Virus record (IMG/VR): IMGVR_UViG_3300042261_002390
Coordinates: 124,001 to 188,000 of that record
Length of the DNA: 64,000 nucleotides
Strand: one strand, 5' to 3'
Below the pieces are notes generated by a model. That model was not told the DNA's origin. It made no database searches and saw nothing but the letters and a program-made list of their open reading frames with translations. The translations under genes and the position numbers were made by a program. Shown in pieces: positions 5,228-37,787 of this stretch; the stretch's first letter is position 1, and each line of letters opens with the position of its first letter.

Positions 5228-5256
5228 AAAAGCGCAATAAGAATTGCGCTTTTTTT
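5228..5256 (+). terminator. Intrinsic terminator
   Basis: AAAAGCGCAAT-aaga-ATTGCGCT-TTTTTT hairpin plus U-tract. Confidence 0.85.
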
Positions 5257-5259
5257 ATC

Positions 5260-6554
5260 ATTATTGTTTTTCTTTTCATAAATTTTTAGTATTTATGTAT
5301 GTTATTACATACGAAATGTTGAAAGCAATTAAAATAAGATTATATTTAAATCAAGAACAAGTTAATTATGTGAATAATTTGCTTGGTACTTCTCGTTTTA
5401 TCTATAATAATTTACTTGCTTATAGGATTGAAAAATATGATAAAGATAAACGCAGTGTTTCTTTTGGAGAACTAGGTAAAAAACTAGTTGAATTAAAATC
5501 TGAACATGAATGGATAAAAAATAGTCATTCAAAAGTTTTGCAACAATCTATGATTAATTTAGATGTTGCATATAAATCGTTTTATAAAAACGGTAATGGT
5601 TTTCCTAAATTTAAATCAAAAAAAGACAATAAACAAAGTTGTAGATTTCCTTCTGATGCTATTGGTAGAATTAAAGGAAATAGAATAAATATCGTTAAAC
5701 AGCTTAAAGATATTCATTTTAAATGTAGCACTAAAGATGAAATATTTTTAAATTACAATCAAAAATTAATTAAATCTGCAACACTAGCAAAAACCAAATC
5801 TAATTGTTATTATTTGAGCATTTTAATTGAAGATAATAGAACAAAGCAATTACCAAAAACAGATAATATTATTGGTTTAGATTTGGGGATAAAGGATTTT
5901 ATTATAACTAGCGAAGGTGAAGTATTTGAGAATATTAAAATTAGACGAAATAATCAAAAGAAATTAGTTAGACTTAACAGACAATTATCAAAAAAAACTA
6001 ATGGCAGTAAGAACAAAAACAAAGCAAGAATTAGATTAGCAAAATTTCATGAGAAATTAAATAACAAAAAAGAAAATTACTTGCATTTAATTACTAATCG
6101 ATTACTTAATGAAAATCAAGTTATAGTTATTGAAGATTTAAATGTAAAAGGAATGTTAAAAAATCATTGTTTAGCAAAATCAATACAAGAGTTAAGTTTA
6201 AATAGGTTTAAGAATATTTTAGTTTATAAATGTCATTGGTATGGAAGGGATTTAGTCGAGATTGACAGATATTATCCTTCTTCAAAGTTATGTAATTATT
6301 GTGGCTATAAGAATGATGAACTGACATTGAAAGACAGAGAATGGGTTTGTCCAGAATGTAAAACTCATCATGATAGGGACATAAATGCTGCAATTAATAT
6401 AGGAAAAGAAGGAAAAAGAATTTTATTAATTAGAGAAAATAAAATAAATATAGGGTTGAGTTCACCCGAATTAACGCCTTTGGACAGTCGTGGTTACACA
6501 CTGGATGAATTAGGAAAAGAATGTAATTATAACGAATTTATGTGATTACGGAAC
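5260..6554 (+). mobile_element. Non-autonomous IS605/IS1341-like element (tnpB only); ends approximate
   Basis: tnpB with no adjacent tnpA, lying between a terminator and the promoter of the next gene. Confidence 0.6.
5316..6545 (+). CDS. tnpB: IS200/IS605-family RNA-guided endonuclease TnpB
   Basis: N-terminal MLKAIKIRLY HTH, FPKFKSKK, RuvC-I GLDLGIKD, RuvC-II IEDL, zinc finger CNYC/CPEC, RuvC-III DRDINAAINI. Likely start is the ATG at 5316. Confidence 0.95.
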   Translation: MLKAIKIRLYLNQEQVNYVNNLLGTSRFIYNNLLAYRIEKYDKDKRSVSFGELGKKLVELKSEHEWIKNSHSKVLQQSMINLDVAYKSFYKNGNGFPKFKSKKDNKQSCRFPSDAIGRIKGNRINIVKQLKDIHFKCSTKDEIFLNYNQKLIKSATLAKTKSNCYYLSILIEDNRTKQLPKTDNIIGLDLGIKDFIITSEGEVFENIKIRRNNQKKLVRLNRQLSKKTNGSKNKNKARIRLAKFHEKLNNKKENYLHLITNRLLNENQVIVIEDLNVKGMLKNHCLAKSIQELSLNRFKNILVYKCHWYGRDLVEIDRYYPSSKLCNYCGYKNDELTLKDREWVCPECKTHHDRDINAAINIGKEGKRILLIRENKINIGLSSPELTPLDSRGYTLDELGKECNYNEFM

Positions 6555-6575
6555 TATTTATGGTTATATGAAATA
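6445..6575 (+). ncRNA. Probable omega/reRNA overlapping the tnpB 3' end
   Basis: TnpB guide RNAs are known to overlap the gene 3' end. A locally GC-richer hairpin (GGGTTGAGTTCACCC) follows RuvC-III. Boundaries are inferred. Confidence 0.5.
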
Positions 6576-6583
6576 ATTGTGTT

Positions 6584-9500
6584 ATGACATACGAAGAATT
6601 CAGAGAAAAATTTTTACCAGAATTTAGTAAAATCAGGACATTTGCGGGAAAAATTAGATATGCAGACCAATACTTAACTAAAATAGGTGCTGGAACTGGT
6701 CGTGCTGTTTATGATATTGACGGCAGTAAGGTATTAAAAGTTGCTAAAAATCCCAAAGGCGTTGCTCAAAATGAAGTTGAAGCACCACTTGGTGATGATT
6801 ATTATATTAAAGATGTTGTTACTGAAGTATTTGATAGTGCCGATGATGATAGCTGGATAATTGCAGAAAAAGCAAAAAAGGTTAATGAAAGTAGAATTAA
6901 ACAATTAACTGGTATACCAAGTTTGGTTAGATTATATACATTTTTAAAATATGTTTATGAACAAAGTGTAAAACCAAATCGAAATAACCCAACTAGATTA
7001 AATCAAAATGAAATAGATTTTTTTTATGAAAATGAATTTGCTTCTGGTTTGGCTGATTTAATTGGTAGTTATGAACATTCGTATGGTGATATGGGTAGAC
7101 CAAGCAGTTATGGCGAAGTTTTGCGTAATGGTCAACCAACAATAGTTTTAACTGATTATGGATTGAACGATGAGGTATATTCACAACACTATGATAGAAG
7201 TAGAAAAAAAGGGTATCGTATGTATGAATTATATCAGTTTGCTGATGGTAATGATGACATGCTTTCAGATATTGGTAATACCGGGGAAGTTCGTCATGTT
7301 ATGTGGGCACAAGTACCATATAGCGTAGGTGATGGTGATGGCGTTATTAATGAAGAATTTGTACATTTTGTATCGAATCGTGACTATTATCCTGAAAAAC
7401 CTTTGGAAACAATGCCATATTTGGTTGAAAATTTCCACGAATGTATTAATAATTTGAAGGAAGCATTAAATGTTGCAAAGGATAAGAAACATTTTTATAG
7501 TAATTTATTGAAACTCCAAGAATATTTAACTAATCAAGGTTGGTTTAATAGAGAACCACTTGGTGAGTTATACGAGGTTGATAATAAAAAAATTAATGAA
7601 AGTTTAGATATTAAATTAGCTAATGAGGTTGCATTGGAAGTTGCACAGATTAAAGGTTTTAATGAGCCTAAATACTTAGGTTCTGGCAATTTTGGTGTTG
7701 CTTATGATATTGGTGATGGTAAGGTGTTAAAAATTACTACAGACCATACGGAAGCTAATGAAAATATAGGTTTATTAGGTAAACCATTAAAATATATTGC
7801 AAAACCATTTAATGTATATAAAATCGAATCAGAAAGTGGTAGAGTTGATGACGATACTTATGCAATAGTACTTGAAAAACTTCAAACTGATGTTGAAAAA
7901 TTTACTAAATTAAGACAGCGATTAGATTATGCGTTTGGTAAAATATTGGATTTAAGTCTTGCTGATGTTTTGGCTGATTATGTTGCTGATTATATTAATC
8001 CCGGGGATATGAGAAGAATTGAAGCTTATATGAAGAAGAACCCAATAGATGCTGAATTTTTCTATAGTTTGATTCATATTGCTGATGAAGCTAAATCATA
8101 TGGTGTTGATAGTATTGATTACATTAACCCGAAAAATCTCGGCTATATGCCTAGTGGAGCGATTGGTTTTTTTGATGTTGGATTTGGTAATGCATTCGTA
8201 CAACCCGACATACCAAAAATGAGTATTGGCGAAGATGGCGCAGCTAAATTTTCACAGACCGATTCTATTGGTCGTGATGATTTTCCAACATATGACCAAG
8301 ATAACGGCGATGACCCTATTGAGAACAATCTTGACGCTAATTCGGCAAATTATGTTGACGAAAGAGAAATGAAGTTCATGCCAAAAAGTAAGGGTGTTGA
8401 AGTTAAGAAGAAATGTAGATTAGGCGGGTTAGGTAATACTAGTGCAGCATGTAATCAAGGAGATATTAGTAATTTGAATATCAGTAGATTAGATGAAATT
8501 AATATCAGACATAATGAAACCGTTTGGGGTTGGGTATCACCAAATAACGAATTTATACGTGTTCCTAAACTAAATCATAGGGGATATATCATGAGAGTAT
8601 ATAAGGACTATGAATATAGCTGGGATTATGATAGAGTGTTTGATAAAGCAATTGAAGACGGATGGGTTAGAGTAATTTATGAATATTTCTCAGATAAATT
8701 TCGTGGCGAATTATCATTAAACGGATACGATAAAGATAGGGTGATTTCCGTATTTAAAACAATGTTTTATGATTTAGTTAAATATGGTGGTAATAGCATT
8801 TATTTGGAATATGAAAATCCTAAAGGCTATGATAGTTTTTATGCTGGCAATACTGAAGGTAGAAAAAAATTAAATGATTTTATTGGTATTACTGAAACAA
8901 TTAATGAAGAAATCCATGCTGATGATGCTAAGGAATATAACGATGCTATGCAAGCTATGCTTGATGGTAAAAAGGATGTATCAACAATTGCATTTAAAAT
9001 CAGACCTGCTTTGCGTGATGTTGTAACTCAAAATGATTTTGGTTTAATCCCGGTACAACAGGAAAGAAGTAATGTCGATATGAATATCGTTTATCGTAAA
9101 ACTTCAAGGGGTGAAGCTAATGCAAAACGATTGTATCAAATTATGATGAAACATGGTGGTTATGCTGCAGACCAAACACCTGATGAAGCACGTGAGATTG
9201 GTATGTTATTGGATTATAGTAATGATTCGATTAATCAATATATTGAAAATAAGTATGTTAATAAAATAGATGAAGGTATTTTTGACGATTTTGAAACTAG
9301 ATTCAGAGCACATAAAATAAGTAATGTTGAAAATGTGATATACCGTGAGTCTGATGGATATTTTATAATAAAAAATCCGAAATCATTACAACATATTACT
9401 CATAACGTTCGTGGTGTTATTACATCTTCAGGTGATTTATATGTGGAAAATTATGTGAAAAAAGTGCATAGTACTATTTTAATGATACTGAGTGATTTAG

Positions 9501-11950
9501 GTATCATTCAATATGTTGAGGGATGGACACGAGTGCTGCCGAATGAATTTATTACAGTTACACGGTATAAAAACACTAATAATTTTTTTGCTGGTGAATC
9601 AAATATAATGTTAAGCCAAGATGATAAAAGAATTTCAGGAAATTGGAATGGTGTAGCTGATTATCAAGAATCTTTAAGACTGTTTCAAAGTTATATGAAT
9701 AAGGCTAAAGATAAGAATCCTGACATAAATTTTTATCCTGAAAAAATAAACGATTATGATGATTCATACAATGGATTGAAGGGCTTATATTTTGAAGGTG
9801 TCGGTGATACTTATGTTGAAAAGAAATTTGGCATTGAACCTGAATTTTCTGATTTTGAAGATAAATATAATTCAGCACAAAATTATAAAGATAGGGACAA
9901 GGTGGTATATAACGATGGTAAAGGTCTTGTCATAATAAAAAATCCTAAGAATTTAGATAATATCGGATATGGCGTTAGAGGTATTATTGACAAATATGGT
10001 AATTTATATGTTGAACAAAAATCGAAAGTAATACATGATAAGATTTTGAAGATATTAACTGAATTGGGATTAATTAAATATAATATAAATTGGCGATATG
10101 AGATTCCTACTGAGTTTATTACTGTGCATAGAAATTATCACAAGAATCAATTTTTACTTGGTGATTCTAATGACATGATGATTCCTGATGAATATAGGAG
10201 TGAATATCAAAAGGATATTTTGCCTAGTTTTTCTGAAGCAGAACCAGTATTTAATACATTTATTGAAAAAGCAAAACAAGTTAATCCTGATATTGATTTC
10301 AGTACAGACCTTATTGATGGCTATGTAAAATTCAATACTAATGAGGGTGTTGGTGACAAATATGCTGAGAAGAAATTTGGTGTTGAGCCAGAATTTTCTG
10401 ATTTTGAAAAAAGATATGCATCAAAACAGAATGTTGAACAAGAAGAGGTGGTATACCAAGATAATGAATTGATTTTAATTAAAAACCCTAAATCATTGGA
10501 ACATATCGGCTCAAATGTAAGAGGTGTTGTTGATAAAGAAGGTAATTTGTATGTTGAACAAGAAGTTGGAAATATACATGAAGATATTTTAAAAATACTA
10601 AATAGTTTAAACTTAATTAGATATCAAAATAATTGGGAAAGGAAAATTCCTTCAAATTATATAACAGTTCAAAGATATTATAATACTGATTTATTTTATT
10701 TGGGCGAATCAAATGAAACAATGCTCCCTGATGAAGATAGATTTGAAGACCATAATGCAGCTAGATATGTAGATGCAAAACCAGTGTTTCAACAGTTCAT
10801 TCATCGTGCAAAACAAAAGAATCCTAAAATTAAGTTTATTAATGATATGTTGACTGTTTATCAGGATTATAATGAATCAGTGGAAAAATTTGATAATAAT
10901 TTTGGTTTGTATTCAGAAAATACTATCTTTGCTGATGAAAATTTAGATGAAACTTTAGGTGAGTTGGATAAATACTACGTGAAAACTGGTATATATGACG
11001 ACGAAGACCGTGATGTGATTTTATCGATAACGAATGGTGATAATTGGACAAAGCTTATTGCTGACATGTATTATTATCTTGGAGATAGGTATAATAAGCA
11101 AATGGTTGAACCGAGAAAATTAAATGATAATGAAATCACGTATCTTAAAAATACACATGAATTATTGAAGGCGTATGATAAAAATGTATTACCAATTCAT
11201 GACTTATTTGCTCGTGAACATAATGCACATGCTCTTGAAAAAATGAATGACCTTAATACTAGGAATGTTATACTGAAGAAACTTAAACAGATTCCAAGTG
11301 TATATCTTCGTAATTTAAGAGCTGATTTGAGAAAGGAAAGAGACCATTATGAATTTGATAGTTTGTTGAAAAACATTAATTCAATTCTTAATTCAATGAG
11401 AGTTCTGAATAATGTTAATGCTGAAAGAGCTAATTTAATTTTAAAGAAAGTTTTTTCAAATGAGAACGATACTTTTGAAAAGATTAAAGAAAGATTTGAT
11501 AATATATTTATACCATATTTGTCACAAGATGAACCGATTGAGGAAATTTTAGATAATATTAAGTATTGGAAAGATGAAGTGGAATTGTTATATAATAAGA
11601 ACGACGTTGTTGCTGTTAAAATAATGAGTGCTGAAGCAATGACAGCATTTGGTTGTAGTTCACAATGGTGCTTTGCAAGAGATACTGGTTGGTGGGATAA
11701 TTATGCTGAATATGGGTTTGCAACAATTGTATATAACTTTAATTTAGACCCTAGTGACCCTAAAAGAATGGTCGTGGTTTTAGATAATGGTAATGTATAT
11801 AACATGTATAATGAGTACATGGATGAAGGTATTGAATATTTGGAAGAAATTGGTGTATATGATTATATGCCGACATCGGATGAATATGAACACGAGTTTG
11901 ATAGCGAAGTGAATGAAAATATTGAAGAGGCTAGAAAATTAATAATTTGA
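6584..11950 (+). CDS. 1788-aa polyvalent protein: two protein-kinase-like domains, three ~180-aa repeats, C-terminal PcfJ-like domain
   Basis: Kinase 1: IGAGTGRAVY..VLKVAK..E..DMGR..LTDYG. Kinase 2: LGSGNFGVAY..VLKIT..E..DYINPKNLG..FFDVG. C-terminal AMTAFGCSSQWCFA..WWDNY resembles PcfJ-like domains. Confidence 0.8.
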   Translation: MTYEEFREKFLPEFSKIRTFAGKIRYADQYLTKIGAGTGRAVYDIDGSKVLKVAKNPKGVAQNEVEAPLGDDYYIKDVVTEVFDSADDDSWIIAEKAKKVNESRIKQLTGIPSLVRLYTFLKYVYEQSVKPNRNNPTRLNQNEIDFFYENEFASGLADLIGSYEHSYGDMGRPSSYGEVLRNGQPTIVLTDYGLNDEVYSQHYDRSRKKGYRMYELYQFADGNDDMLSDIGNTGEVRHVMWAQVPYSVGDGDGVINEEFVHFVSNRDYYPEKPLETMPYLVENFHECINNLKEALNVAKDKKHFYSNLLKLQEYLTNQGWFNREPLGELYEVDNKKINESLDIKLANEVALEVAQIKGFNEPKYLGSGNFGVAYDIGDGKVLKITTDHTEANENIGLLGKPLKYIAKPFNVYKIESESGRVDDDTYAIVLEKLQTDVEKFTKLRQRLDYAFGKILDLSLADVLADYVADYINPGDMRRIEAYMKKNPIDAEFFYSLIHIADEAKSYGVDSIDYINPKNLGYMPSGAIGFFDVGFGNAFVQPDIPKMSIGEDGAAKFSQTDSIGRDDFPTYDQDNGDDPIENNLDANSANYVDEREMKFMPKSKGVEVKKKCRLGGLGNTSAACNQGDISNLNISRLDEINIRHNETVWGWVSPNNEFIRVPKLNHRGYIMRVYKDYEYSWDYDRVFDKAIEDGWVRVIYEYFSDKFRGELSLNGYDKDRVISVFKTMFYDLVKYGGNSIYLEYENPKGYDSFYAGNTEGRKKLNDFIGITETINEEIHADDAKEYNDAMQAMLDGKKDVSTIAFKIRPALRDVVTQNDFGLIPVQQERSNVDMNIVYRKTSRGEANAKRLYQIMMKHGGYAADQTPDEAREIGMLLDYSNDSINQYIENKYVNKIDEGIFDDFETRFRAHKISNVENVIYRESDGYFIIKNPKSLQHITHNVRGVITSSGDLYVENYVKKVHSTILMILSDLGIIQYVEGWTRVLPNEFITVTRYKNTNNFFAGESNIMLSQDDKRISGNWNGVADYQESLRLFQSYMNKAKDKNPDINFYPEKINDYDDSYNGLKGLYFEGVGDTYVEKKFGIEPEFSDFEDKYNSAQNYKDRDKVVYNDGKGLVIIKNPKNLDNIGYGVRGIIDKYGNLYVEQKSKVIHDKILKILTELGLIKYNINWRYEIPTEFITVHRNYHKNQFLLGDSNDMMIPDEYRSEYQKDILPSFSEAEPVFNTFIEKAKQVNPDIDFSTDLIDGYVKFNTNEGVGDKYAEKKFGVEPEFSDFEKRYASKQNVEQEEVVYQDNELILIKNPKSLEHIGSNVRGVVDKEGNLYVEQEVGNIHEDILKILNSLNLIRYQNNWERKIPSNYITVQRYYNTDLFYLGESNETMLPDEDRFEDHNAARYVDAKPVFQQFIHRAKQKNPKIKFINDMLTVYQDYNESVEKFDNNFGLYSENTIFADENLDETLGELDKYYVKTGIYDDEDRDVILSITNGDNWTKLIADMYYYLGDRYNKQMVEPRKLNDNEITYLKNTHELLKAYDKNVLPIHDLFAREHNAHALEKMNDLNTRNVILKKLKQIPSVYLRNLRADLRKERDHYEFDSLLKNINSILNSMRVLNNVNAERANLILKKVFSNENDTFEKIKERFDNIFIPYLSQDEPIEEILDNIKYWKDEVELLYNKNDVVAVKIMSAEAMTAFGCSSQWCFARDTGWWDNYAEYGFATIVYNFNLDPSDPKRMVVVLDNGNVYNMYNEYMDEGIEYLEEIGVYDYMPTSDEYEHEFDSEVNENIEEARKLII
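9269..10880 (+). repeat. Three tandem diverged ~540-nt domain repeats inside the giant ORF
   Basis: Each copy has IKNPK.L..I...VRG.I...G.LYVE...H..IL..L...W....P...ITV.R...G(E/D)SN. Copies 2 and 3 share EGVGD.Y.EKKFG.EPEFSDFE. Confidence 0.9.
10901..10931 (+). promoter_or_regulatory. Bacteroidota-type promoter embedded in the giant ORF
   Basis: TTTG-N19-TATCTTTG, located in an interdomain linker. Confidence 0.45.
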
Positions 11951-12101
11951 TAAAATTCAAAAAAAGAATATCAATAGAGATTTGAGAAAGTTTAAATACT
12001 TGACATCTATGGGATATACTATATTGTATCTATGGGAATATGATTTAAAACACAATTTAAATGAATGTAAAAATAAATTAAATAGACTGTTATATGAATA
12101 A
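11946..12101 (+). pseudogene. C-terminal relic of a Vsr/DUF559-like endonuclease
   Basis: Start-less frame FDKIQKKNINRDLRKFKYLTSMGYTILYLWEYDLKHNLNECKNKLNRLLYE*. The RD..K...L...GY.IL.LWE.D pattern is typical of Vsr-like nucleases. Not in the ORF track. Confidence 0.75.
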
Positions 12102-13719
12102 GATAAAAAATTTTATAGCTGATTTAAAAACCAAACCGTTTATCAAATCAATGATAAATGATTTGAATGCTGAAGTATATGTTGTTGGTGGTGCAACTAG
12201 AGACCTTATTCTCAATAAAAATAACAAGGATATTGATTTATTAATTAGAAAAATACCAATCGATGTGTTAATATCTCATTTAAAAAATTATGGTAAATTA
12301 GATATTGTGGGTAAATCATTTGGAGTTATTAAGTTTATTGATTCAGATGGCGTTGATTATGATATAGCATTGCCTCGCCGAGAAAAACCAACAGGTGAGG
12401 GTGGACATAAAGACTTTGAAATTCAGAGCGATGAAAATTTACCGATTGAAGTGGATTTGAGTAGAAGGGACGCTAAACTTAATGCAATGGCAATTGATTT
12501 AAACAACGAAAAATTTGTTGACCCTTTGGGTGGTTTGGACGATATTCAAAATAAACAAATATCTGCTGCAAATCCTAATGCATTTTCAGATGACCCACTT
12601 CGTATGTTGAGAATGATTGGTTTTGCAAGTCGATTTGGATTTACGATTGAACCCAGAACAATGGAAATGATTCAAAAAAATGCTGAAAGTATTAAGAGAA
12701 TACCTGCTGAAAGAATTATCGAAGAATTCAAGAAGATTATCGAAAAGGGTAATCCTAGAATTGGTGTTGAACTTTTAGTATCTACCGGGTTATTTAAACA
12801 AATATTTGGTAATGAAATCAAGCAATCACAAATAGATAAGCGTGATTTTGAAAGCGTTAAATCTATGGCTGAGTTTTTATTTTTGATGATGTATGATGTT
12901 GTTCAAAATCCGTCACAATTTTATTTAAGTAAATTTAGTACGGAAGATGCTTTAAGGGATAAAAACTATAAAGAAATAAAAGCATTGGAGTTGGCATTTG
13001 CAAATACCAATAATAATCCAGTGGCTACAAGGTCAGTTGCACATAACATGTATGTAATGTCACCTGTTTCTTTGGAGAGTTCAATTCTTCCTTCTGAGAT
13101 TAAAACTGCAGCACAGGATTTGCTTTCAGGTAGATATCCTAAAACAGTTAATGAATTGGCTGTTAATGGCGGTGATTTAATGCAGTTAGGATTAAAAGGT
13201 AAAGAAGTTGGTGATATGCAAAAGTCATTATTGCTTAAAGTTTATGGCGATAAAGTTCGTAACGATAAGAATAGTTTGCTTGCTGTTGCTAAAGGTGAAG
13301 AACCAAACAACTTAAGTGAGGTTGATGCTAATATTGATAAGAATGTTCTTTATAGTGCAGTTGTGCTTGACGATGAGTCACGTAGCAAATTATTGAAAGT
13401 GGTTCAACCTATGATACCTGATGGTTGGGAAGTTATAGCGCATCACATGACAATCAAAATGGGTGCAATAAACCCCGAAAATCGGGGTGATTTGAATACC
13501 GAAGTAACGCTTGATGTTATTGATTACGCTATCGATGATATGGCATTTGCTGTTGGTGTAAGTGGTTATCCATCCAACAATAAGAAGCCTCATATTACTA
13601 TTGCAATTAATAGACTTGAAGGTGCTAAACCAGTAATGTCTAATAATTTAACTGATTGGAAACCATTAGGTTTTCCATTAAAACTGAAAGGAATTGTTAC
13701 TGAAATTAAACGAAATTAA
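12094..13719 (+). CDS. cca: CCA-adding/poly(A) polymerase-family nucleotidyltransferase fused to a C-terminal 2H phosphoesterase
   Basis: VVGGATRD..KDID, DLSRRD..NAMA, DPLGG..D, FSDDPLRMLR. The C-terminal domain has two HxT motifs (HHMTI, PHITI). Confidence 0.88.
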   Translation: MNKIKNFIADLKTKPFIKSMINDLNAEVYVVGGATRDLILNKNNKDIDLLIRKIPIDVLISHLKNYGKLDIVGKSFGVIKFIDSDGVDYDIALPRREKPTGEGGHKDFEIQSDENLPIEVDLSRRDAKLNAMAIDLNNEKFVDPLGGLDDIQNKQISAANPNAFSDDPLRMLRMIGFASRFGFTIEPRTMEMIQKNAESIKRIPAERIIEEFKKIIEKGNPRIGVELLVSTGLFKQIFGNEIKQSQIDKRDFESVKSMAEFLFLMMYDVVQNPSQFYLSKFSTEDALRDKNYKEIKALELAFANTNNNPVATRSVAHNMYVMSPVSLESSILPSEIKTAAQDLLSGRYPKTVNELAVNGGDLMQLGLKGKEVGDMQKSLLLKVYGDKVRNDKNSLLAVAKGEEPNNLSEVDANIDKNVLYSAVVLDDESRSKLLKVVQPMIPDGWEVIAHHMTIKMGAINPENRGDLNTEVTLDVIDYAIDDMAFAVGVSGYPSNNKKPHITIAINRLEGAKPVMSNNLTDWKPLGFPLKLKGIVTEIKRN

Positions 13720-14422: not shown

Positions 14423-15436
14423 TTAAATATATTTAAAAAAATATCCTTTAGTGTGATTTCTTTCACCACTAATAACTCTTCTAATACATTTGTCTTTAAT
14501 TTTCATAATATCACATAATTCATGTATATTATTGAAAGTGCGAATGTATTGTTTTGTATTATAGTCAAACATTTCTATTTTACGTAGCTTAGATAATCTA
14601 TTATATGTGCCTTGTCGATATTCTCTTAATGTTTGAAATATTTCATATTTTCTGCTTAGTCTTAATGTTTCAGAATCATAATACATTTCATTTTTTATTA
14701 TATTGAGGTCGTGATATGAATAATAAAAAATTTTTGAGATGTAATTATTACTTGACTGATATACTGTATTAGTTAATTTAGTGTTATTCGATATGTGATA
14801 TCTTAAAAAATCATGTTTAATTTGTTTTAATAATGCCTCCGACCCGATTATCTGAAATCTTAGTCTTCCTTTTTTTTGATTTTTTTCGTTAGTAATTGAC
14901 CCGTCACCATCAAAAACACCTCTAATAAAATGCCAAAAATATTCATTAGGTATATTTGGCATTTCACAGGTGAACGATTTGTTGGGATATATGCCCAATT
15001 TATTTAAATCATCAACAATTTCTTTAGATGCTATTTGTAATGAATATCTAGTATATGTTTTATTTGTTCTTTTATCAAAAATATCGTATTTGGCTAATTT
15101 ATGTTCAGACTTGAGTTCTCGTTTAAATATTTCAACAAGCTCACTGTCTTTAGATGTAAAAGTTAATTTAAATTTATTAACATATCCGTCAGATATGATT
15201 AATCCTAGTATGTAAGCTTTATTTTTATTGTTGATTTCTTTAAAAAAATTTATATCAATGCTGTGTTTTCTATTATTGCCGTCGTGAGATTTATTATCTA
15301 ACGTATATCCATATTTTTTCAACCGATTTCCGATTGTTGATGGTGATACGTCACCAATTAAGTTAGCTATTTTATTTAATGAGTATTTATCTTTAAAATA
15401 ATAATTAAATATTTGTTCTATGTTTATGTTTTTCAT
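14423..15436 (-). CDS. Free-standing LAGLIDADG homing endonuclease with HTH/NUMOD1-like domains
   Basis: AYILGLIISDG and HFIRGVFDGDGSI motifs, NUMOD1-like C-terminus (IRTFNNIHE...TKGYFFKY), own minus-strand GTATTTAT at 15455-15462. Confidence 0.9.
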   Translation of the reverse strand: MKNINIEQIFNYYFKDKYSLNKIANLIGDVSPSTIGNRLKKYGYTLDNKSHDGNNRKHSIDINFFKEINNKNKAYILGLIISDGYVNKFKLTFTSKDSELVEIFKRELKSEHKLAKYDIFDKRTNKTYTRYSLQIASKEIVDDLNKLGIYPNKSFTCEMPNIPNEYFWHFIRGVFDGDGSITNEKNQKKGRLRFQIIGSEALLKQIKHDFLRYHISNNTKLTNTVYQSSNNYISKIFYYSYHDLNIIKNEMYYDSETLRLSRKYEIFQTLREYRQGTYNRLSKLRKIEMFDYNTKQYIRTFNNIHELCDIMKIKDKCIRRVISGERNHTKGYFFKYI

Positions 15437-21231: not shown

Positions 21232-21630
21232 ATGGTATCATATAATATTAATTTTCCTTTAAGGGATGATGTTTCAACAAATACATTTTTTTTAACCACT
21301 AAAGTTACTAAAGATGCATTTAGTTCCGATTTATTGTTATTGTTGCTCACTCAAAGGGGTGAAAGATATTATGAACCAGACTATGGAACAAATTTATTGA
21401 AATATATTTTTGAGCCGAATGATAACATTACAGCAACTGATGTTGAGCAAGAGATAAAAAGAACCGTATCGTTATATATTCCAGCACTTACTATCAATAA
21501 AGTGTCATTTAATTGGAATTTCGACGATAACGGTAAGCCAATATCAGACAACCAATTAAATGTAAATATTATGTTCACATATACTGAAGATGCATTTAGC
21601 GAAACTGGTTCATTAGATTTAAATTTTTAA
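21232..21630 (+). CDS. Baseplate wedge subunit, T4 gp25/GPW-like
   Basis: LLLLLTQRGERYYEPDYGTNLLKYIFEP signature. GTATTTATA at 21208. Confidence 0.9.
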   Translation: MVSYNINFPLRDDVSTNTFFLTTKVTKDAFSSDLLLLLLTQRGERYYEPDYGTNLLKYIFEPNDNITATDVEQEIKRTVSLYIPALTINKVSFNWNFDDNGKPISDNQLNVNIMFTYTEDAFSETGSLDLNF

Positions 21631-21643
21631 TTAAAATACAAAT

Positions 21644-23491
21644 ATGGCAGCAGAAACAACAAATATTATTAAGTACGGAAGTAGAACATTTGGTGAAATA
21701 CGTACTGATTTAATTTCATTTATCAGACAAACATATCCAACAATATTAAGTGATTTTACCGATTCTAGTATTGGGTCGATGTTGATTGACTTAAATGCTG
21801 GTGTTGGTAATAATCTTAGCGTTAATACTGATAGAGCATTTCAGGAAACACAACTAGAATATGCCCAACAAAGAGCATCAATATTAAATATTGCAAAAAA
21901 TATGGGATTCAATATCCCGGCAAAAAGACCATCAGTTACTGTTGTTGATTTTACTGTACTGATTCCTGTATTGGGTGATAAACCAGATGCATCATATTAT
22001 CCTGTTTTAGATGCAGGAGCACAAATTATCGGCGGTGGTAAAGTATTTGAAACACAAAATGTTATTGATTGGAGTTCTCCATATAGTAGCTTAGGTGACC
22101 CAAATCGCTCAATAATTCCAAATTTGGATTCGAATGGTGTGATTGTGAGCTATAATGTTACCAAGAGAGAAGTTGTTGTTAATGGCACGTCTAGTATATA
22201 TAAGACAATAATTACCAGTAATAATGTTGTTCCCTTTTTCAGCATAACATTACCTGACCCGGATGTTATTGAGATTGAAAGTATAATTCTTCTTGAAGGC
22301 ACGAATTATAACACTAACCCAACTGCTAGTGAATTTAATAATTCCGCTAACAGATATTATGAGGTGGATTACCTAGCGCAACAGAAAGTTTTCGTTGAAA
22401 ATACACAATCGTCACAATTAAATGTTCAAGCAAATGGCGTAAAGGCAGCTCAATGGATTGACGTTACAAAAAAATTCATAAAAGAATTTACTTCGAATGG
22501 TTATTGTAAAGTCACATTTGGTTCGGGGGATTCTGATATTGATGCATTTAAAAGTGGGTTTTTAAAAGAAGGTGTTAGTAATAAATATTTTCTCGAAAAT
22601 TTCTTAAATAATACAGCACTTGGTGAAAAATTGAAAGCAGGTTATACTTTATTTGTTAAATACCGTACTGGTGGTGGTTCAAGTTCAAATATTGGAGCAA
22701 GAGCATTAACTCAATTAGGTAATTATACACTTACTTCAAATGGTTCTCGTCAAGATTATCGACAAAATGTTGTAAGAAGTTTAAAAGTAAATAACCCAAT
22801 CCCGGCAATTGGTGGTAATGATGGTTTAAGTGTAGAACAAATAAGACAATTGATTAAATATAATTTTTCATCACAAATGAGAGATGTTACGTTAACTGAT
22901 TATTTGTTGCAAATATATAAAATGCCGGGTAAGTTTGGTTCGCCATTTAGAGCAAATGCATTAAAATTAGACAACAAGGTAATTATACCAATTTTAGATA
23001 TTGGTGCTGATGGAAAATTGTCAAATACTAGCAATAGTTTATTAAAAGAAAATATTGCAGAATATCTTAGTCAGTATAGAATGATTAATGACTATATTGA
23101 AATCAGAGATGGTAAAATATTTAATCTCGCATTTGATATTGATGTTTATGTTGAAAACATTGCCGATAATCAAATTGCTAATAGTATTATTACAATTGTA
23201 AGAAACTATTTGGATATCAATAATTATGAAATGAATGAGGACATATTTCTCGGAAGATTACAGAAAGAAATTTTAGCAGCAAACGGTGTTATTAACGTTA
23301 TTGAAATTAAGGTATATAATAAACAAGGCGGTAATTACTCCAACAATGTTGTATCACAGGATATTTTAAATACCTCAACAGGTCAAATTAAAATTATTAA
23401 TAACACAATTTATTCGACAGAAGATTCGATGTTTGAAATCAAATATCCTGAAAAGGATATTAGAGTTTTCTTACGTAAAAAGACTGTATAA
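21644..23491 (+). CDS. Baseplate wedge subunit, T4 gp6/baseplate J-like
   Basis: RTF.EIR..L, DF..SSIG.MLID, D....E..L..AQ.R.S..NIAK..G, VTFGSG, YRTGGG, AIGG.D, R.VTL.DY. Confidence 0.9.
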   Translation: MAAETTNIIKYGSRTFGEIRTDLISFIRQTYPTILSDFTDSSIGSMLIDLNAGVGNNLSVNTDRAFQETQLEYAQQRASILNIAKNMGFNIPAKRPSVTVVDFTVLIPVLGDKPDASYYPVLDAGAQIIGGGKVFETQNVIDWSSPYSSLGDPNRSIIPNLDSNGVIVSYNVTKREVVVNGTSSIYKTIITSNNVVPFFSITLPDPDVIEIESIILLEGTNYNTNPTASEFNNSANRYYEVDYLAQQKVFVENTQSSQLNVQANGVKAAQWIDVTKKFIKEFTSNGYCKVTFGSGDSDIDAFKSGFLKEGVSNKYFLENFLNNTALGEKLKAGYTLFVKYRTGGGSSSNIGARALTQLGNYTLTSNGSRQDYRQNVVRSLKVNNPIPAIGGNDGLSVEQIRQLIKYNFSSQMRDVTLTDYLLQIYKMPGKFGSPFRANALKLDNKVIIPILDIGADGKLSNTSNSLLKENIAEYLSQYRMINDYIEIRDGKIFNLAFDIDVYVENIADNQIANSIITIVRNYLDINNYEMNEDIFLGRLQKEILAANGVINVIEIKVYNKQGGNYSNNVVSQDILNTSTGQIKIINNTIYSTEDSMFEIKYPEKDIRVFLRKKTV

Positions 23492-24687
23492 TGGAAGTTA
23501 TAAAAAAAACTATATTACAAGCGTTAATTACAGGTACTACTATTGTGAGTGGTGTCACAAAATATGTTATCATACCTAATCCGGATGCTGTTTATCATAT
23601 GAAAATTGGATTGGACTCAAATTCTGAAGATATTGGTTTTTTTGATGTAATTACTGATTATGTGAGTGGTAGTACAACAACCACAACCAGTACAACAACC
23701 AGTACCAGTACAACTACCACAACTAGTACAACAACCAGTACCAGTACAACTACCACTAATTCACCTAGCTGTAATTTGAACATGACATTAAATATTGGTG
23801 ATGAAAATCTAAATTGGGGTGGTTATTTAGGTAATTACAATAGTAATTATGGTAATATAATTGTTAATTATGGGGATGGAAGTCCATTAGAAACTATAGA
23901 AGCATATGATGATGGAGGAACATGGTTCTATTACATAGAAAAGACTTATGGAAGTACTGGAATATATAATGTATCTATACAACTCCCTATTTGTGACTTA
24001 CCATTTATTAGTTTTGTTAATGCTAATATATCTCAACTAAATATAATAGATTTTCCTAATATTGAGCATTTCGAATTAGTAAATCAATTGGTAGAGTTAA
24101 ACATTCCTGATTTAAACAATTTTAAATCTTTAAAACACTTCTACTTAAATGGTGGTGTATATGAAACTACAGATTTTACAGTATTGCCTTTACTAGAAGA
24201 ATTAAGTATTGGAAGTTCGGATATTACTGGTTTAAATATTAATAATATGGGTTCTTTGTTAATGCTTAGTATAACACAATGTACTGGTATAGCGACTATA
24301 GATGTTGCTGGTTTATATAATCTTCTTGATATAGACATAGTAGATACGCCCATATCTATAAATAATCTTAATGAGTTGACATCAATAACAATTCTACGTT
24401 TAGAGAATGTTAATATGTCTAATATAGACTTAAGTGTAATTCCTTCTCTTGAAATATTCATAGTAGTGAATGGAACGTCTTTTACTGATGTTTTTGATTT
24501 TTCACAATCTCCAAATTTGTATCAAATAGCAATATCTAGTACATCTTTAACTGCGGGAGAAATTGAAACATCCATCTATTCTGTTTATGATAGAACATCA
24601 TTAACACAGGGAAGTGTGTCATTTGCAGAATTCCCATATACACCAACAATACTTAGTTATTTAGCATCCGTAAATTGGACAATATAA
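23491..24687 (+). CDS. Virion structural protein with Thr/Ser linker, PKD-like and LRR-like domains
   Basis: Baseplate operon. ~30-residue T/S tract, VNYGDGS...TYGSTGIYNVSI (PKD-like), repeated LxxLxxLxI units. Confidence 0.7.
   Translation: MEVIKKTILQALITGTTIVSGVTKYVIIPNPDAVYHMKIGLDSNSEDIGFFDVITDYVSGSTTTTTSTTTSTSTTTTTSTTTSTSTTTTNSPSCNLNMTLNIGDENLNWGGYLGNYNSNYGNIIVNYGDGSPLETIEAYDDGGTWFYYIEKTYGSTGIYNVSIQLPICDLPFISFVNANISQLNIIDFPNIEHFELVNQLVELNIPDLNNFKSLKHFYLNGGVYETTDFTVLPLLEELSIGSSDITGLNINNMGSLLMLSITQCTGIATIDVAGLYNLLDIDIVDTPISINNLNELTSITILRLENVNMSNIDLSVIPSLEIFIVVNGTSFTDVFDFSQSPNLYQIAISSTSLTAGEIETSIYSVYDRTSLTQGSVSFAEFPYTPTILSYLASVNWTI
23671..23757 (+). repeat. Thr/Ser-coding tandem repeat (36-nt unit duplicated at 23689-23724 and 23725-23757)
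   Basis: AGTACAACAACCAGTACCAGTACAACTACCAC(AACT) x2. Confidence 0.9.
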
Positions 24688-24698
24688 TATTTAATATA

Positions 24699-25139
24699 AT
24701 GATTATAACCGGAAATACTGAAAGTAGATTAATTGAGCTTAGAAAATATAAGGTAACTAATGTTTTTGAGCAAATGTACGTTAGCGGTGGTACGTTAAGT
24801 AAAGATGGTGTTGATTATTCAGTATCAACATCTAATAGTATTGTTTATTATTTAGGGGGAATTAGGTATTGTGATACAATCACTGGAAGTACGTCCGGAA
24901 CTAGTTATTCATTTACTAGTCAAAGTTATGGAAGTCCTGATTTTATTGATTTACCTTATTATAAAAATCCTAATAAAGAAAATATCATCAGTAATCCAAA
25001 AATAGATGATGATGTATTTATTATAAGACAAGAATCATCAGCGTTTGAAAATAACTATAGGCTTGAGTATGTGAAAAATCTCAATGATTTAATTACATAT
25101 GCTGGTGGTAATTACTTTAAAATTGTAAATAATTCATAA
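24699..25139 (+). CDS. Putative virion structural protein
   Basis: S/T/G-rich ORF in the baseplate operon. Confidence 0.7.
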   Translation: MIITGNTESRLIELRKYKVTNVFEQMYVSGGTLSKDGVDYSVSTSNSIVYYLGGIRYCDTITGSTSGTSYSFTSQSYGSPDFIDLPYYKNPNKENIISNPKIDDDVFIIRQESSAFENNYRLEYVKNLNDLITYAGGNYFKIVNNS

Positions 25140-25140
25140 T

Positions 25141-26049
25141 ATGAGTATTGGAACATATGGTATAGTTAGAGCATCTGATGTCAGTATCAATGATATTGAG
25201 GTATATTATAATTACACGCCGGATAGGTATACTGCAAATAATACTATTTTAAAAATAGATGATGCTACGAGTGTACTTGATTATTGCTATCTCCCAACAA
25301 ATGACCCGAATGCTGTAGGTACTGAAAATTTGTTAGAGGGAATGTATGATTTGAGATTACCAGCATCTATATTTAATCAATTGGGTATATATACAATATA
25401 TATTAAGCCTAAAACAGTTAATTCAGTTATTGTTGATTGCAGTGTTTTATCTGCATTACCATCTATAAGGGGTATTGTTTTAGATATTAATTCATTGCCG
25501 GAAGATTTAAGAGCAAATAATGCAATGCAGGGATATAGAATTGAATATATTAATGCAGATGGAACTAAATTAAGAAATGTTGTACGTTACGTGGTAACTG
25601 CTAATAAAGTATCACCAGTTAGTGAAAATGTCGGTGATACGAATCAAAAAGCAATACGATATAGATTTGATGATTCCGGAACATTGATGTTTTTACAATT
25701 AACACCAAGTAGTTCGTCTGATGTGAAAGCAAACGTAAAGCCATTTATTGGTAATGTTGGGCAAACAATATTAATTACAAATACTTATTTTTCACCAGTT
25801 GTCCTCGAAGTTGAATTAGTTGAAAATACTATTGATACTTTATCAAATATTATTGCAGGGGAACAAATTAAAGACGTAAGTAACGGCATATTAACATATT
25901 ATGATTCAAATAGAGTTATAACAAAACAATTTAATTTGTTTGAAATTAAGGATGATGTTACTAATGTTTCATTATATGAAGTAAAAGAAAAACGGACATA
26001 TATCGATGAAAGTCAAAATTTTGATGATATCGTTAATGAGGTATCTTAA
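25141..26049 (+). CDS. Putative baseplate structural protein
   Basis: 302-aa beta-rich ORF in the baseplate operon. Confidence 0.7.
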   Translation: MSIGTYGIVRASDVSINDIEVYYNYTPDRYTANNTILKIDDATSVLDYCYLPTNDPNAVGTENLLEGMYDLRLPASIFNQLGIYTIYIKPKTVNSVIVDCSVLSALPSIRGIVLDINSLPEDLRANNAMQGYRIEYINADGTKLRNVVRYVVTANKVSPVSENVGDTNQKAIRYRFDDSGTLMFLQLTPSSSSDVKANVKPFIGNVGQTILITNTYFSPVVLEVELVENTIDTLSNIIAGEQIKDVSNGILTYYDSNRVITKQFNLFEIKDDVTNVSLYEVKEKRTYIDESQNFDDIVNEVS

Positions 26050-26076
26050 ACCATATTATATTGACAATTAACTTGA

Positions 26077-26109
26077 GAAAAATCCCGATGTAAAATATTG
26101 GGATTTTTC
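26077..26109 (+). terminator. Intrinsic terminator
   Basis: GAAAAATCCCGAT...ATTGGGATTTTTC. Confidence 0.7.
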
Positions 26110-26143
26110 ATTTTATAGGTATTTATAATAAAAATTTAAGCTT

Positions 26144-29100
26144 GTGGCAAAAGTTAAAGTTATAAATAACAATCTCGACCAAAATTTAAACGGGAACACA
26201 TTCACTAACGTACCATCTGAAACAATATTTTCATTTGGTAAATTTTCGATTACGTCTAATTTTGATGGACGAAAATATATCAATTATTCTGATACTTTAA
26301 GTTCATTCGTTCGTCCAGTAACATTGGAAAATATAGGCATTTCGGATGTTGAATCAGAAATTATCTATCAGTACAATACCAATGCAGTTTTAAATTTAGA
26401 CAAATCAGATTTAAACACTTTCATTAGATTTGGTTCGGCATATGAATTTTTAAGAGTATGTATTGAGAACATTATCCTTACATATCCCGGAAGTATTTTT
26501 ATGAATTCTCAATTGTCGAGAAATAATAATATAACGTATTTTGATTATATATATGACCCGGTAAGTAATTCATCAACATTTAAGATTCCGATGAATTGTG
26601 TTATGAATACATTTGGGTTGGTTTATAATTATGGGAATAATAGTATTCCAGACAATAACGAGCTTAAGAATCTAAATTTTTCGTATGAGAATTATGTGGT
26701 GTGGACATCAATGAATCCTGATGATAATACTAGTAATGTTATCGGTTTCACTGGAAATACCACAGGGAGAAACTATTTAACACTTACTGTTCATGGTAAT
26801 CCGTTTAGTATGATTACTACTGATTCAGCACCGCTTGATTTTCACATCAAGCCTAATAATTATGTTTTTGAAAAATTTAGGGCGGTCTTAAATGAATTTG
26901 AAAAATATATTGTTTCATCTAGAGTGGGTATGAATGGTTTTGAATTTGTTTTGAAAGACCCGACCTTGTTGGATGATGGTAACATTACATATTCGGATAT
27001 TAAATTATTGTGGAATACGTCAGACAAATATAATATTGACATAAACACACCTAACTATCAGAAATTTTTGGAAATTGTTTTAACTGTTGGGGTAAAATAC
27101 GATAAAATTAAAACAGACTTAATTGCAAGATTTTTAACTCCTTCGTCAATTAAGGCATATGACCTTACAGATGAGGGAAAAATGACTAAATTGCTTAGAA
27201 TTTACGGTAGAGAATTCGACCAAATTCGTGAATTTATTGATTCGTTGGTTTATATTAATAAGGTGACGTATGATAAAGTAAACAATGTCCCCGACCAAGT
27301 TGTAAGAAATTTATCAAGAACATTCGGATGGGATTATTTCTCATTGGTTAATGAAACTGAATTGATTGAAAGTTTTTTAACTGTTGATGAAAATGAGAGA
27401 GATTTGAATTCTGATTTATTGCCTGCTGAGATTGATATTGAATTGTGGAGAAGGATTATCATGAACACCAATTATTTTTGGAAAAGTAAAGGCACTAGAG
27501 AAGCCATTAAATCGATGTTTTTATTAATTGGTATTCCCGAGCCATTTATAAATATTACTGAATATGTGTATACTGTTGATGGAAAGATAAATCCAAATAC
27601 TGTACCGTTTTCAATAAATGATTTCCCAACACAATCATTACCATACGATACTGAAGGTTATCCTAAAGCACCAATCGAAGGTAATAATTATTATTTTCAA
27701 ATATCCGGGGATACTGATAACGGTCAAACATATTTTGACTTATTTAGAAAAGTTGGATTTAATTTGATGAGAACGCCAGATAATAAAAAATCTTGGGTTG
27801 AAAGTGGTGCAACTTATCGAATAGACGATTCAACGCCACAATATTATCAATTGGATAGTAAACTTGTCCTTAATACTAAGGAAGTTGATGTTGCTCTTGA
27901 TACTGCAAGAGGTATTGAGTATGATGTATATAACTATATTCAAAAGGATTATGCAATTAATTCTAGTGGATATACATTGCCATACTCATATGTAAATATA
28001 TCATTAGGCGTTAGTGGTTCACAAAACACATTTCCACTTCCATTAAATTATTCTTCTGAGAAGGTTATGGGCGACCTTGAAGTTCGTTTTAATGGTATAT
28101 TATTAAATGCTCCGAAAACAGGAACAACAACCGGAATCACATACCAAGCTGATTATAGTATTGACGAAGTTAGTAAGACATTTACCATCCTTAATGGAAT
28201 ATATGCTAAAAATAATACGTTGAGAAGGGATGTTATACAAGCTACATTTATTTATTCTGGTGGTACTCATTCACTTTCAGGATTATCAGTAAATTATGTT
28301 GTAACTAGGGTTAAGGCTGATGTAAATGGAACTGTAATACCATTGCCGACATATCCACGTGGTGATGTTCAAGTAACTATTAACGGTATTGCATTAACTA
28401 AAGGTACACCACAATTTATCGCAGATTATACACTCGACCCAAATAATTCAACAGGTAGTACAAATAATCAAATTATTATTCAAAATCCTGAAGTTATTGC
28501 ATATTTACAAATAAATCCCGAAATTCAAATTGCATATGTTGAGGTTGAAGGCAGTAATGATATTTATGCAAGAAGTGAAATTGTTAGAGTAGATAGTTTT
28601 AATTCAAGTAAAATATATTTGAATCAATCTGCAAATAAATATGTTTATAGATTGAATTATAAGGCAAATAATGCTTCTGACATTAAAGTGTTAATTGATG
28701 GGATTGCACTTGAACCAAATACCGATTATTCAATAAATGTACAAAATCTATATGAGGTTTTCTTACCAAGAGGTATAAAATACGGAAGTGTGATAAGCGT
28801 CTATTATCTTGTTGGTGCGAATGCGTTGTTTAACCCGGTGATATCTGATGTATTTGGTATTGGTGATATTAGCAATTTATCGTTTTTAGAATTTATTGAT
28901 TTGATTCAAAAAAGATTGGTTAATAGTAGAAATAGAAAAACAATTAGTGATTTTAAGGGTGGTTGGTATCCTACTTTATTGAGAGTATATACCGAATACT
29001 TGAAACGTGCAACATTGCCGGAAGATAATCCATTGCATTCAAATGGTTACACATTTGCTAATTTATATCCATTCTTAAGTAAATATAATGCATTTTTCCA

Positions 29101-37755: not shown

Positions 37756-37787
37756 CTTGTGTTTTTGATATTTTCAAGTTAATTTTG
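37756..37787 (+). promoter_or_regulatory. Bacteroidota sigma-type promoter (tandem with late motif at 37741)
   Basis: CTTG-N20-TAATTTTG. Confidence 0.65.

Follow-up and report, generated by a model that had tools for sequence, protein, structure and literature searches.

The locus described here raises the question of whether one very long phage gene encodes a single working protein or a chain of proteins that are cut apart in the virus head. The gene lies in a stretch of 64,000 nucleotides (hereafter, the window), which corresponds to positions 124001–188000 of the IMG/VR virus record IMGVR_UViG_3300042261_002390 (G000), and its open reading frame (ORF) specifies a giant protein of 1788 residues. 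The record is 246 kb in length and estimated to be 75% complete, has a GC content of ~30%, and carries nearly all of its genes on the plus strand; judged from its gene sequences, the genome is that of a distant T4-like jumbo phage. An earlier note, made from the sequence of the window, had interpreted the product as a polyprotein that is packaged in the head, cut after Glu in (L/I)xE motifs and injected at infection. Our analysis leads to a related reading, to which we assign a rough probability of 55%: the giant protein would be a polyvalent cargo precursor, the couplers between its modules being cut by the head protease and the effectors being ejected with the DNA.

Polyvalent proteins (Iyer et al. 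2017, PMC5512222) contain many unrelated effector domains in shuffled modules, and their packaging and delivery along with the DNA have been predicted. The giant protein is a member of this class. It comprises ~10 modules in the order K1-X-K2-L-B-C-D1-D2-D3-E (Table 1), which are shuffled in its relatives, in agreement with the 2–15 unrelated domains and mosaic relatives by which the class is defined, and the hallmark domains of the class are present, namely a C-lobe-less kinase here and ART-PolyVal, GNAT and 2H domains in relatives. No embedded processing peptidase (MPTase or other), which is not obligatory for the class, was detected in the giant protein by Pfam or PHROGs. In the whole protein, Pfam gave nothing above the cut-off, and PHROGs gave one match, to a family of unknown function (residues 29–208).

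A database search identified 94 relatives (1000–2900 residues), all metagenomic and many encoded on contigs of 300–366 kb. Family statistics refer to 95 proteins, i.e. the giant protein and these relatives, in which modules were mapped by BLAST and hidden Markov models (HMMs). The N-terminal part of the family is constant, K1-X-K2(-K2)(-K2)-L, and the variable part consists of B, C, D (one to five copies) and E in differing orders and copy numbers. Most relatives add further modules, such as a CCA-adding enzyme (PF01743/PF12627), a 2H phosphoesterase (PF13563, PF08302-like), GNAT (PF00583/PF13508), ART-PolyVal (PF18760), ParB (PF02195) and others. Both the published class and these fused modules of the relatives had been overlooked in the earlier note. 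The closest relative, P0002, is 69% identical across residues 1–1458, and a protein identical to the giant product is also encoded on a 339,914-bp contig. A nucleotide search of the phage collection with this DNA yielded no match, the protein search yielded three K1-like matches only, and the sole match in the prokaryote genome collection was a K1 homologue (55% identical) on contig L012 (JBAZIW010000001.1, 362,763 bp). This contig is labelled as a metagenome-assembled genome of Candidatus Paceibacterota, a label that gives no clue to the host; its size and content point to the genome of a jumbo phage that was binned as bacterial.

The principal evidence for cleavage is the position of the motifs. 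Module borders were set without reference to the motif, using peaks of BLAST high-scoring segment pair (HSP) ends in the 94 relatives and low-confidence linkers in two AlphaFold models built on family alignments, which cover residues 1–645 (mean predicted local distance difference test score, pLDDT, 79) and residues 638–1260 (mean pLDDT 82). The HSP-end peaks lie at residues 334, 545, 592, 639, 770, 894, 925, 1068, 1251, 1420 and 1455. All ten motifs previously quoted at domain boundaries are present (starting at residues 254, 336, 635, 772, 894, 1069, 1252, 1429, 1453 and 1776), but only six follow the strict (L/I)xE rule; these are all of the form [LI][ND]E (INE257, INE339, LDE638, INE775, IDE897 and LDE1456), and the other four miss the rule at P3 (YFE1071, TNE1254, YNE1431 and VNE1778). 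The borders coincide with the six [LI][ND]E sites and with xEG at residues 1071 and 1254. Five of the [LI][ND]E sites are ≤5 residues from an HSP-end peak and, since the peak windows span ~7% of the protein, the binomial probability of this coincidence is ~1e-5. IGE550 and VDE593, which are [LIVM]xE sites, adjoin the peaks at 545 and 592, and E1071 and E1254, both in xEG, sit at the peaks between D1 and D2 and between D2 and D3; in total, the giant protein contains 33 [LIVM]xE sites. Segments with pLDDT <50 were found at residues 210–253, 329–338, 552–600, 615–621 and 636–645 in the first model and at residues 771–775, 894–911, 1008–1024, 1055–1076 and 1250–1260 in the second. Every junction motif in the modelled part is located inside or at the edge of such a segment, with flanking domains at >85–90.

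The same association was found throughout the family, in a test that included 910 breakpoints in the 95 proteins and a window of 5 residues. Near breakpoints, [LI][ND]E is enriched 6.0- to 6.1-fold and [LI]xE 3.3-fold, whereas the five rearrangements of these residue classes are enriched 1.3- to 2.4-fold and the control motifs [LI]xD, [LI]xQ, [LI]xK and [AGS]xE reach 0.67-, 0.48-, 0.78- and 0.87-fold, respectively. The number of [LI][ND]E sites observed near breakpoints was 261, compared with 38.5 expected from local composition. In the variable region, 73% of 568 breakpoints have [LIVM]xE within 5 residues, compared with 25% of random positions. The earlier expectations that the motifs would lie between predicted domains and would be enriched there over background were both borne out. 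The junction logo shows L/I (V/M) at P3, N/D at P2 and E at P1; across the family, the Glu at P1 is fixed, P3 is L, I, V or M and P2 is N, D, K, T or S. Module C is preceded by [ILM]-x-E whether its upstream neighbour is L, B, D or an unknown module, and I-N-E or L-D-E stands before module E in relatives, [IVM]-[ND]-E (continuing as A-E-I-M-S-L-Q-D) before the CCA module and L-L-x-E before the 2H module. A 9-nucleotide string, ATTAATGAA, is common to three junctions, and no DNA identity beyond 9–12 nucleotides was found around the motifs. These data indicate that the junction motif is conserved family-wide at the borders of shuffled modules.

A protease with the appropriate specificity is predicted from the same record. 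Its Peptidase_S77 protein shares 32% identity with T4 gp21 (E = 5e-21), including the SSRG serine motif, and its gene is followed by those for an acidic scaffold and a gp23-type capsid protein, with the terminase and portal genes located upstream of these three. In T4, gp23 loses a propeptide of 65 residues, and gp21 cuts after L/I-x-E (PMC9026906). The sequence M-I-N-E60/S-S of the present capsid protein aligns to the T4 gp23 maturation cut, F-L-T-E65/A-E (slashes mark the cut), and the predicted capsid maturation tripeptide, I-N-E, is that found at three joints of the giant protein. The closest cultivated match to the capsid protein is from a Flavobacterium phage (34% identity). Pfam detected no other protease domain in the giant protein or in the products of neighbouring genes.

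The start of the giant gene and stand-alone homologues of its modules provide additional clues. A promoter-like motif, CTATTTAT, precedes the ATG, and in two relatives a terminator hairpin is followed by GTATTTAT ~22–30 nucleotides before the giant-gene ATG. In the whole record, [GC]TATTTAT occurs in 71 copies on the plus strand and 21 on the minus strand (e.g. at positions 21997, 22778 and 145208 of the record), and 49 of the 92 copies are 10–60 nucleotides upstream of an ORF. It is found 14–40 nucleotides upstream of the genes for the terminase, portal, protease, scaffold, gp25-like wedge, two tail-spike-like proteins and an amidase. Occurrences of the T4 late promoter TATAAATA were not usefully associated with the structural genes of this genome. 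[GC]TATTTAT is thus a candidate phage (possibly late) promoter element, distinct from TATAAATA of T4, and co-expression of the giant gene with virion genes is plausible.

M-T-Y-x-E-F at the N-terminus hardly varies within the family (M-T-Y-E-E-F...L-P-E13 in the giant protein) and resembles the T4 capsid-targeting sequence MKTYQEFIAE, as checked in the T4 record; residues 4 and 7 (Y and F) of the latter matter for targeting (PMC9026906). In the model, the M-T-Y-E-E-F N-terminus forms a confident helix packed on K1 (pLDDT 93). In other phages, D and K1 occur as stand-alone proteins whose N-terminal leaders, of 15–25 residues, end in [LI]xE. The D proteins (190–213 residues) begin with MK.ILTE.QYK... 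and have a second [LIVM]xE just before (D/G)VG(E/D)KY, and the K1 proteins begin with M-T-F-S-Q-F-L-T-E/A (Xoo-sp13) or with MNLNEELQRIKEIMQVDE, which likewise ends at the putative cut. Such leaders resemble the propeptides found on T4 internal proteins, and one stand-alone D gene directly follows a T4 gp13-like neck gene. The published band-based virion proteome of XacN1 does not mention ORF170, a stand-alone K1 homologue, and is uninformative in this respect.

Another leader, of ~16–20 residues (M.L.E(L/I)..R.(K/E)I(W/M).(L/I/V)(N/D)E), is shared by P0083, P0093, P0120, P0124, P0126 and P0127 of other phages, where it stands before unrelated modules (K1, E and ART-PolyVal). It was found in no ORF of the present record and may be the capsid-targeting propeptide of a related lineage of phages.

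A CCA-2H ORF located downstream of the giant gene bears on the history of the latter. Its product is 75% identical to residues 1457–1990 of P0002, and CCA and 2H modules are fused in the proteins of ~70 relatives. In P0002, D3 passes straight into the CCA module, without module E; relative to this arrangement, module E, a stop codon and 143 nucleotides have been inserted between D3 and CCA. By sequence comparison, the ORF is the detached C-terminal part of an ancestral polyvalent gene, and it keeps N-L-S-E between its two modules. One frame of the 143-nucleotide spacer resembles the remnant of an endonuclease C-terminus (...GYTILYLWEYDL...), which suggests a rearrangement associated with a mobile element.

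From these sequence comparisons and structural models we infer that the giant protein is packaged, cleaved and injected, and we assign likely roles to its modules, as follows. The giant gene would be expressed late, alongside the head genes, and the 205-kDa precursor would enter the prohead core, where the exposed [L/I]-[N/D]-E couplers that join the modules would be cut by the S77 protease on the C-terminal side of Glu. The ~10 products, of 5–39 kDa, would include two C-lobe-less kinases, an NleE-fold domain, three paralogous D domains, B, X and E; in relatives, a CCA-adding enzyme, a 2H phosphoesterase, GNAT and an ADP-ribosyltransferase would be released as well. All of these would remain in the head with the DNA, be ejected into the host and act before phage gene expression, probably in host takeover and anti-defence and, in relatives, also in tRNA repair. 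The polyprotein interpretation of the earlier note is strengthened by the S77 protease, the capsid I-N-E site, the conserved linker motif, the promoter-like motif and the stand-alone leaders, and loses four of its motifs and one domain label (PcfJ, see below). A broader proposal, which we put forward tentatively and hold to be somewhat doubtful, is that the head protease serves as a general unloading device in this T4-like jumbo lineage: any module with an [L/I]-[N/D]-E coupler could be spliced in, a single targeting determinant would load the whole chain, and the cargo freed by proteolysis, in stoichiometric amounts and able to fold independently, would be injected with the DNA. Under this proposal, the rapidly diverging D repeats would take the part of the T4 internal proteins, and in relatives the tRNA-repair enzymes would allow damage inflicted on tRNA by the host to be repaired ahead of phage gene expression.

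Several observations weigh against packaging and cleavage in the head. The giant gene is located just downstream of replication genes (DNA polymerase B and NUDIX) and ~9 kb upstream of the baseplate genes, outside the head cluster. [GC]TATTTAT also precedes genes for an SbcD-like exonuclease and a glycosyltransferase, so that 'late' is a tentative designation. In other lineages, the segment equivalent to M-T-Y-E-E-F follows a separate leader; in view of this and of the predicted K1 helix, the likeness of the N-terminus to the T4 targeting sequence may be coincidental, and the N-terminus was downgraded as a candidate T4-like targeting sequence. The CCA-2H ORF keeps L-S-E although it has no N-terminal targeting part, and retention of the motif alone is thus no proof of current cleavage. 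Away from the breakpoint windows, [LI][ND]E shows no depletion (437 sites observed and 283 expected), and the D-domain junctions keep E-G while the P3 residue varies.

In the main alternative, which we consider unlikely, the giant protein would be an uncleaved cytoplasmic multi-enzyme, e.g. a hub for kinases and tRNA repair, in which the motif is a linker, a helix cap or a recombination joint. The replication and nucleotide-metabolism genes upstream are in keeping with such a hub, as are the usually cytoplasmic location of phage CCA-adding and 2H enzymes and the presence here of CCA-2H as an ORF of its own with its internal L-S-E. The motif often opens a module (E-E-I-D-A-S-E-A in C and E-G-V-A-D-K-Y in D) and may be partly structural, and the string ATTAATGAA at three junctions is compatible with micro-homology. 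However, folds as unrelated as kinase, NleE-like, D, E, CCA and 2H are all preceded by this tripeptide, so that it is not explained by any single structural role, and it is located in low-confidence, probably disordered linkers. The fixed Glu at P1 with variable P3 and P2 fits selection on the protein rather than on the DNA, and junction DNA identity is limited to the short stretch described above. Moreover, the motif is the phage's own predicted capsid maturation site, and Asp and Gln at P1 are depleted, as would be predicted for a Glu-specific protease; in T4, an Asp at P1 blocks processing.

It is more improbable still that the giant protein is a true polyprotein cut in the cytoplasm, by another Glu-specific protease or by free gp21-like protease, with products that are neither packaged nor injected. 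The evidence from the junction motif is silent on where cleavage would occur, the gene stands outside the head cluster, and no unambiguous capsid-targeting sequence was identified. On the other hand, T4 gp21-type protease is active only within assembled proheads (PMC9026906), Pfam shows no other protease domain in the protein or its neighbours, the stand-alone D and K1 leaders fit targeting propeptides and have no obvious cytoplasmic use, and the promoter-like motif is common to head genes. Finally, a chance coincidence of motifs and borders in a low-GC proteome rich in Glu, Asn, Ile and Leu is effectively refuted: the six [LI][ND]E sites are near the ~3–4 predicted by composition, [LIVM]xE sites are numerous and four of the ten quoted motifs fall outside the rule, but it is the position of the sites, five of six on independently defined borders, and not their number that is notable, as is the 6-fold enrichment among the 95 proteins.

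Both kinase modules belong to the truncated type. Kinases lacking the C-terminal subdomain have been reported from (pro)phages of Bacteroidetes and Verrucomicrobia (PMC5512222). The core of K1 is predicted with pLDDT >90, and G35/G37/G39, K52, E66, D169 and D191 are invariant in 50 sequences. Profile searches matched K1 to the SteC kinase (E = 7.6e-4) and to PKC iota (E = 0.12), and Foldseek returned kinase-fold matches at a probability of 1.0. In K2 (60 sequences), a Gly, K383, E390, N518 and D531 are invariant and the catalytic Asp, D512, is nearly invariant; its alignment to known kinases runs only to the DFG motif, and among PHROGs it weakly matches the T7-type kinase family (E = 0.03). 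The Pfam Pkinase model gave no match in the giant protein. In profile–profile comparison, only the glycine-loop/Lys region of K1 and K2 aligns (E = 5e-4, probability 31%), and the two may be paralogues, as judged by fold and motifs rather than by sequence. Both kinases are predicted to be active, since the glycine loop, beta-3 Lys, alpha-C Glu, catalytic Asp and metal-binding Asp are kept; the two kinases recognized earlier are thus upheld by fold matches and catalytic residues.

The segment of residues 205–256 (window ~7196–7351), with Y-E-L-Y-x-F-A-D-G-N-D-D...M-W-A-x-x-P-Y...G-D-G, is among the best-conserved segments of the family and is nevertheless predicted to be disordered (pLDDT 30–42). 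In seven of the 95 family proteins K1 is missing and the chain begins precisely with this segment, which could serve as a binding motif, with the scaffold or the portal as possible partners.

Among the other modules, X was detected by HMM in 86 of the 95 proteins, and its helices (residues 257–317) have pLDDT 83–89. In the mini-domain of L, C611, C623 and E638 are invariant in 60 sequences, and the domain ends in NL.I..L-D-E638. This mini-domain (residues 601–638, window ~8384–8497) contains K-K-K-C-R-L-G-G-L-G-N-T-S-x-A-C-N-Q-G-D with the two invariant cysteines, is present in 94 of the 95 proteins, and always ends in NL.[IF]..[IL]xE; inserted modules can split it. B has weak gelsolin-like matches only. 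The three repeats reported previously, each starting with xEG, proved to be real: pairwise identity among D1, D2 and D3 is 37–51% (51% between D3 and D2). In 66 copies of the D domain, N-P, G, H and R never vary and a second R hardly does, and D2 is predicted with pLDDT 93–98. No match to the D domain was found in Pfam, PHROGs, ESM Atlas features or BFVD, nor in PDB by profile, Foldseek or VIA, wide search included. Module E has an invariant GCSSQWCF motif. Its earlier description as PcfJ-like was not sustained: the PcfJ HMM (PF14284) gave no match at E values up to 5 in 12 E-module sequences, nor up to 1 for the whole protein, and the sole link is one cluster of language-model neighbours (score 0.90), of which 33% of the members carry PcfJ.

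Table 1. Features of the giant gene and its surroundings (positions in the window unless the record is named)
Feature	Position	Strand	Residues	Remarks
IS605-type TnpB/OrfB	5244–6545	+	433 aa	Pfam and PHROG 506 (E 5e-118)
Promoter-like motif	6554–6561	+		22 nt upstream of giant-gene ATG, directly after TnpB element
Giant ORF	6584–11950	+	1788 aa	ATG start; internal stops absent
K1	6584–7354	+	1–257	C-lobe-less kinase-like; folded core aa 1–209; ends V-I-N-E257
X	7355–7600	+	258–339	small helical domain; ends K-I-N-E339
K2	7601–8233	+	340–550	second truncated eukaryotic-type protein kinase domain; ends I-G-E550
L	8234–8497	+	551–638	disordered acidic linker with V-D-E593, then ~35-aa mini-domain
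B	8498–8908	+	639–775	alpha/beta domain; ends T-I-N-E775
C	8909–9274	+	776–897	predicted NleE/PG1857-like fold; ends K-I-D-E897
D1	9275–9796	+	898–1071	first, most divergent repeat copy; then Y-F-E1071-G
D2	9797–10345	+	1072–1254	repeat domain, start (E)GVGDTY; then T-N-E1254-G
D3	10346–10876	+	1255–1431	third repeat copy; ends Y-N-E1431
Linker	10877–10951	+	1432–1456	ends N-L-D-E1456; HSP-end peak at aa 1455
E and stop codon	10952–11950	+	1457–1788	helical N-part, alpha/beta C-part
Spacer	11951–12093			143 nt
CCA-2H ORF	12094–13719	+	541 aa	CCA-adding enzyme (PolyA_pol) with C-terminal 2H phosphoesterase-like part; Pfam PF01743, PF12627
Homing endonuclease gene	14423–15436	-		LAGLIDADG/NUMOD-type
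Baseplate wedge genes	21232–23491
1560-aa ORF	26144–30826	+	1560 aa	
599-aa ORF	30866–32665	+	599 aa	
SbcD-like gene	37785–39263	+		gp47-type
SbcC-like gene	42072–45452	+		gp46-type
Protease gene	record (G000) 22025–22726			Peptidase_S77 (gp21-type); PF03420, 72 bits
Acidic scaffold gene	record (G000) 22811–24433		540 aa	adjoins protease; 21 [LI]xE sites
Capsid protein gene	record (G000) 24462–26144			gp23-type; PF07068, 213 bits

The TnpB/OrfB gene ends 39 nucleotides before it and is no part of the giant-protein system; the element is absent from the syntenic site in the relatives L005 and L006. The relatives have only the terminator and GTATTTAT at this site and the last 30 nucleotides directly before the giant-gene ATG match L005; the element thus appears to have been inserted right at the giant-gene promoter. 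The homing endonuclease gene is encoded on the minus strand amid co-directional genes and is likewise absent from the syntenic regions of L005 and L006. Further downstream, recombination nuclease genes of the SbcD-like and SbcC-like types are present, and the SbcC-like protein has an additional N-terminal metallophosphoesterase-like region. The two ORFs of 1560 and 599 residues downstream of the baseplate wedge genes have no PHROG match at E 1e-5 and are each preceded by the promoter-like motif; their products are probably novel baseplate or tail-fibre proteins.

The giant protein can be compared with several known systems. It shares with polyvalent proteins its giant chain, its shuffling and its C-lobe-less kinase, as well as the ART-PolyVal, GNAT, 2H and ParB-type modules of relatives. 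For that class, processing has been proposed to occur by embedded peptidases, mainly of the zincin-like MPTase type, whereas the joints of the giant protein carry the motif of a head protease; moreover, neither the tandem-kinase N-terminal core nor modules B, C, D and E nor CCA-adding modules are described in that study, in which 'CCA' occurs 0 times (PMC5512222). The giant protein also resembles the T4 internal proteins IPI, IPII and IPIII and Alt, in that this phage has a T4-type head module (S77 protease, gp22-like scaffold and gp23-like capsid protein). The short N-terminal propeptides of the T4 internal proteins end in L/I-x-E and are cut after Glu, and the joints here carry the same motif. 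The T4 cargo is diverse, fast-evolving, directed against the host and ejected with the DNA, and it includes an ADP-ribosyltransferase, Alt, comparable to modules in relatives. However, it consists of separate small proteins that have their own targeting peptides and are trimmed at their ends, whereas here one precursor of ~10 units would be cut internally.

In phiKZ-like phages (201phi2-1, phiKZ and SPN3US), which package proteins in large mass, a gp21-related protease also cuts packaged proteins after Glu in a three-residue motif, and redundant cleavage sites are present in the propeptide regions of these giant phages (PMC9026906). Their motif is S/A-x-E, not L/I-x-E, their substrates are single proteins that lose propeptides, and their lineage differs. 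T7 gp0.7 and Salmonella SteC are likewise small kinases that invaders deploy against host proteins; unlike these, the present kinases form a tandem, or in many relatives a triplet, that opens a giant chain. RNA-virus polyproteins, such as those with picornavirus 3C sites, offer a further parallel, with one product, cleavage motifs in linkers and a viral protease that frees the units, but they are unrelated to the giant protein in sequence, protease class and biology. For tailed double-stranded DNA phages, we know of no established strategy of polyprotein processing of enzymatic cargo.

Polyvalent proteins, the targeting and processing of T4 internal proteins, and the protease-processed ejection proteins of phiKZ-like phages are already known. 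L/I-x-E as a universal coupler of shuffled polyvalent modules was not found in PMC5512222 or in a literature search on prohead proteases, polyproteins, ejection proteins and jumbo phages. The head-protease sites appear to act as couplers in a variant of the polyvalent protein, and the combination of a tandem minimal-kinase core with RNA-repair modules, as well as domains B, D and E, appears to be undescribed. Polyvalent proteins are widespread; to our knowledge, it is only from a few cases with embedded peptidases that the division of such proteins into functional pieces is understood. If cutting of the giant protein is done by the head protease, the processing of T4 internal proteins would be joined with polyvalent effectors, and the free shuffling of modules would be explained, since every module brings its own coupler. 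A simple sequence rule could also predict the virion cargo of uncultivated jumbo phages and the boundaries of its mature proteins. In relatives, the tRNA-repair enzymes (CCA-adding and 2H) may be delivered pre-made. Candidates for anti-defence or host-takeover functions would then include a new tandem minimal-kinase core and no fewer than four new cargo domains (B, D, E and C with its NleE fold).

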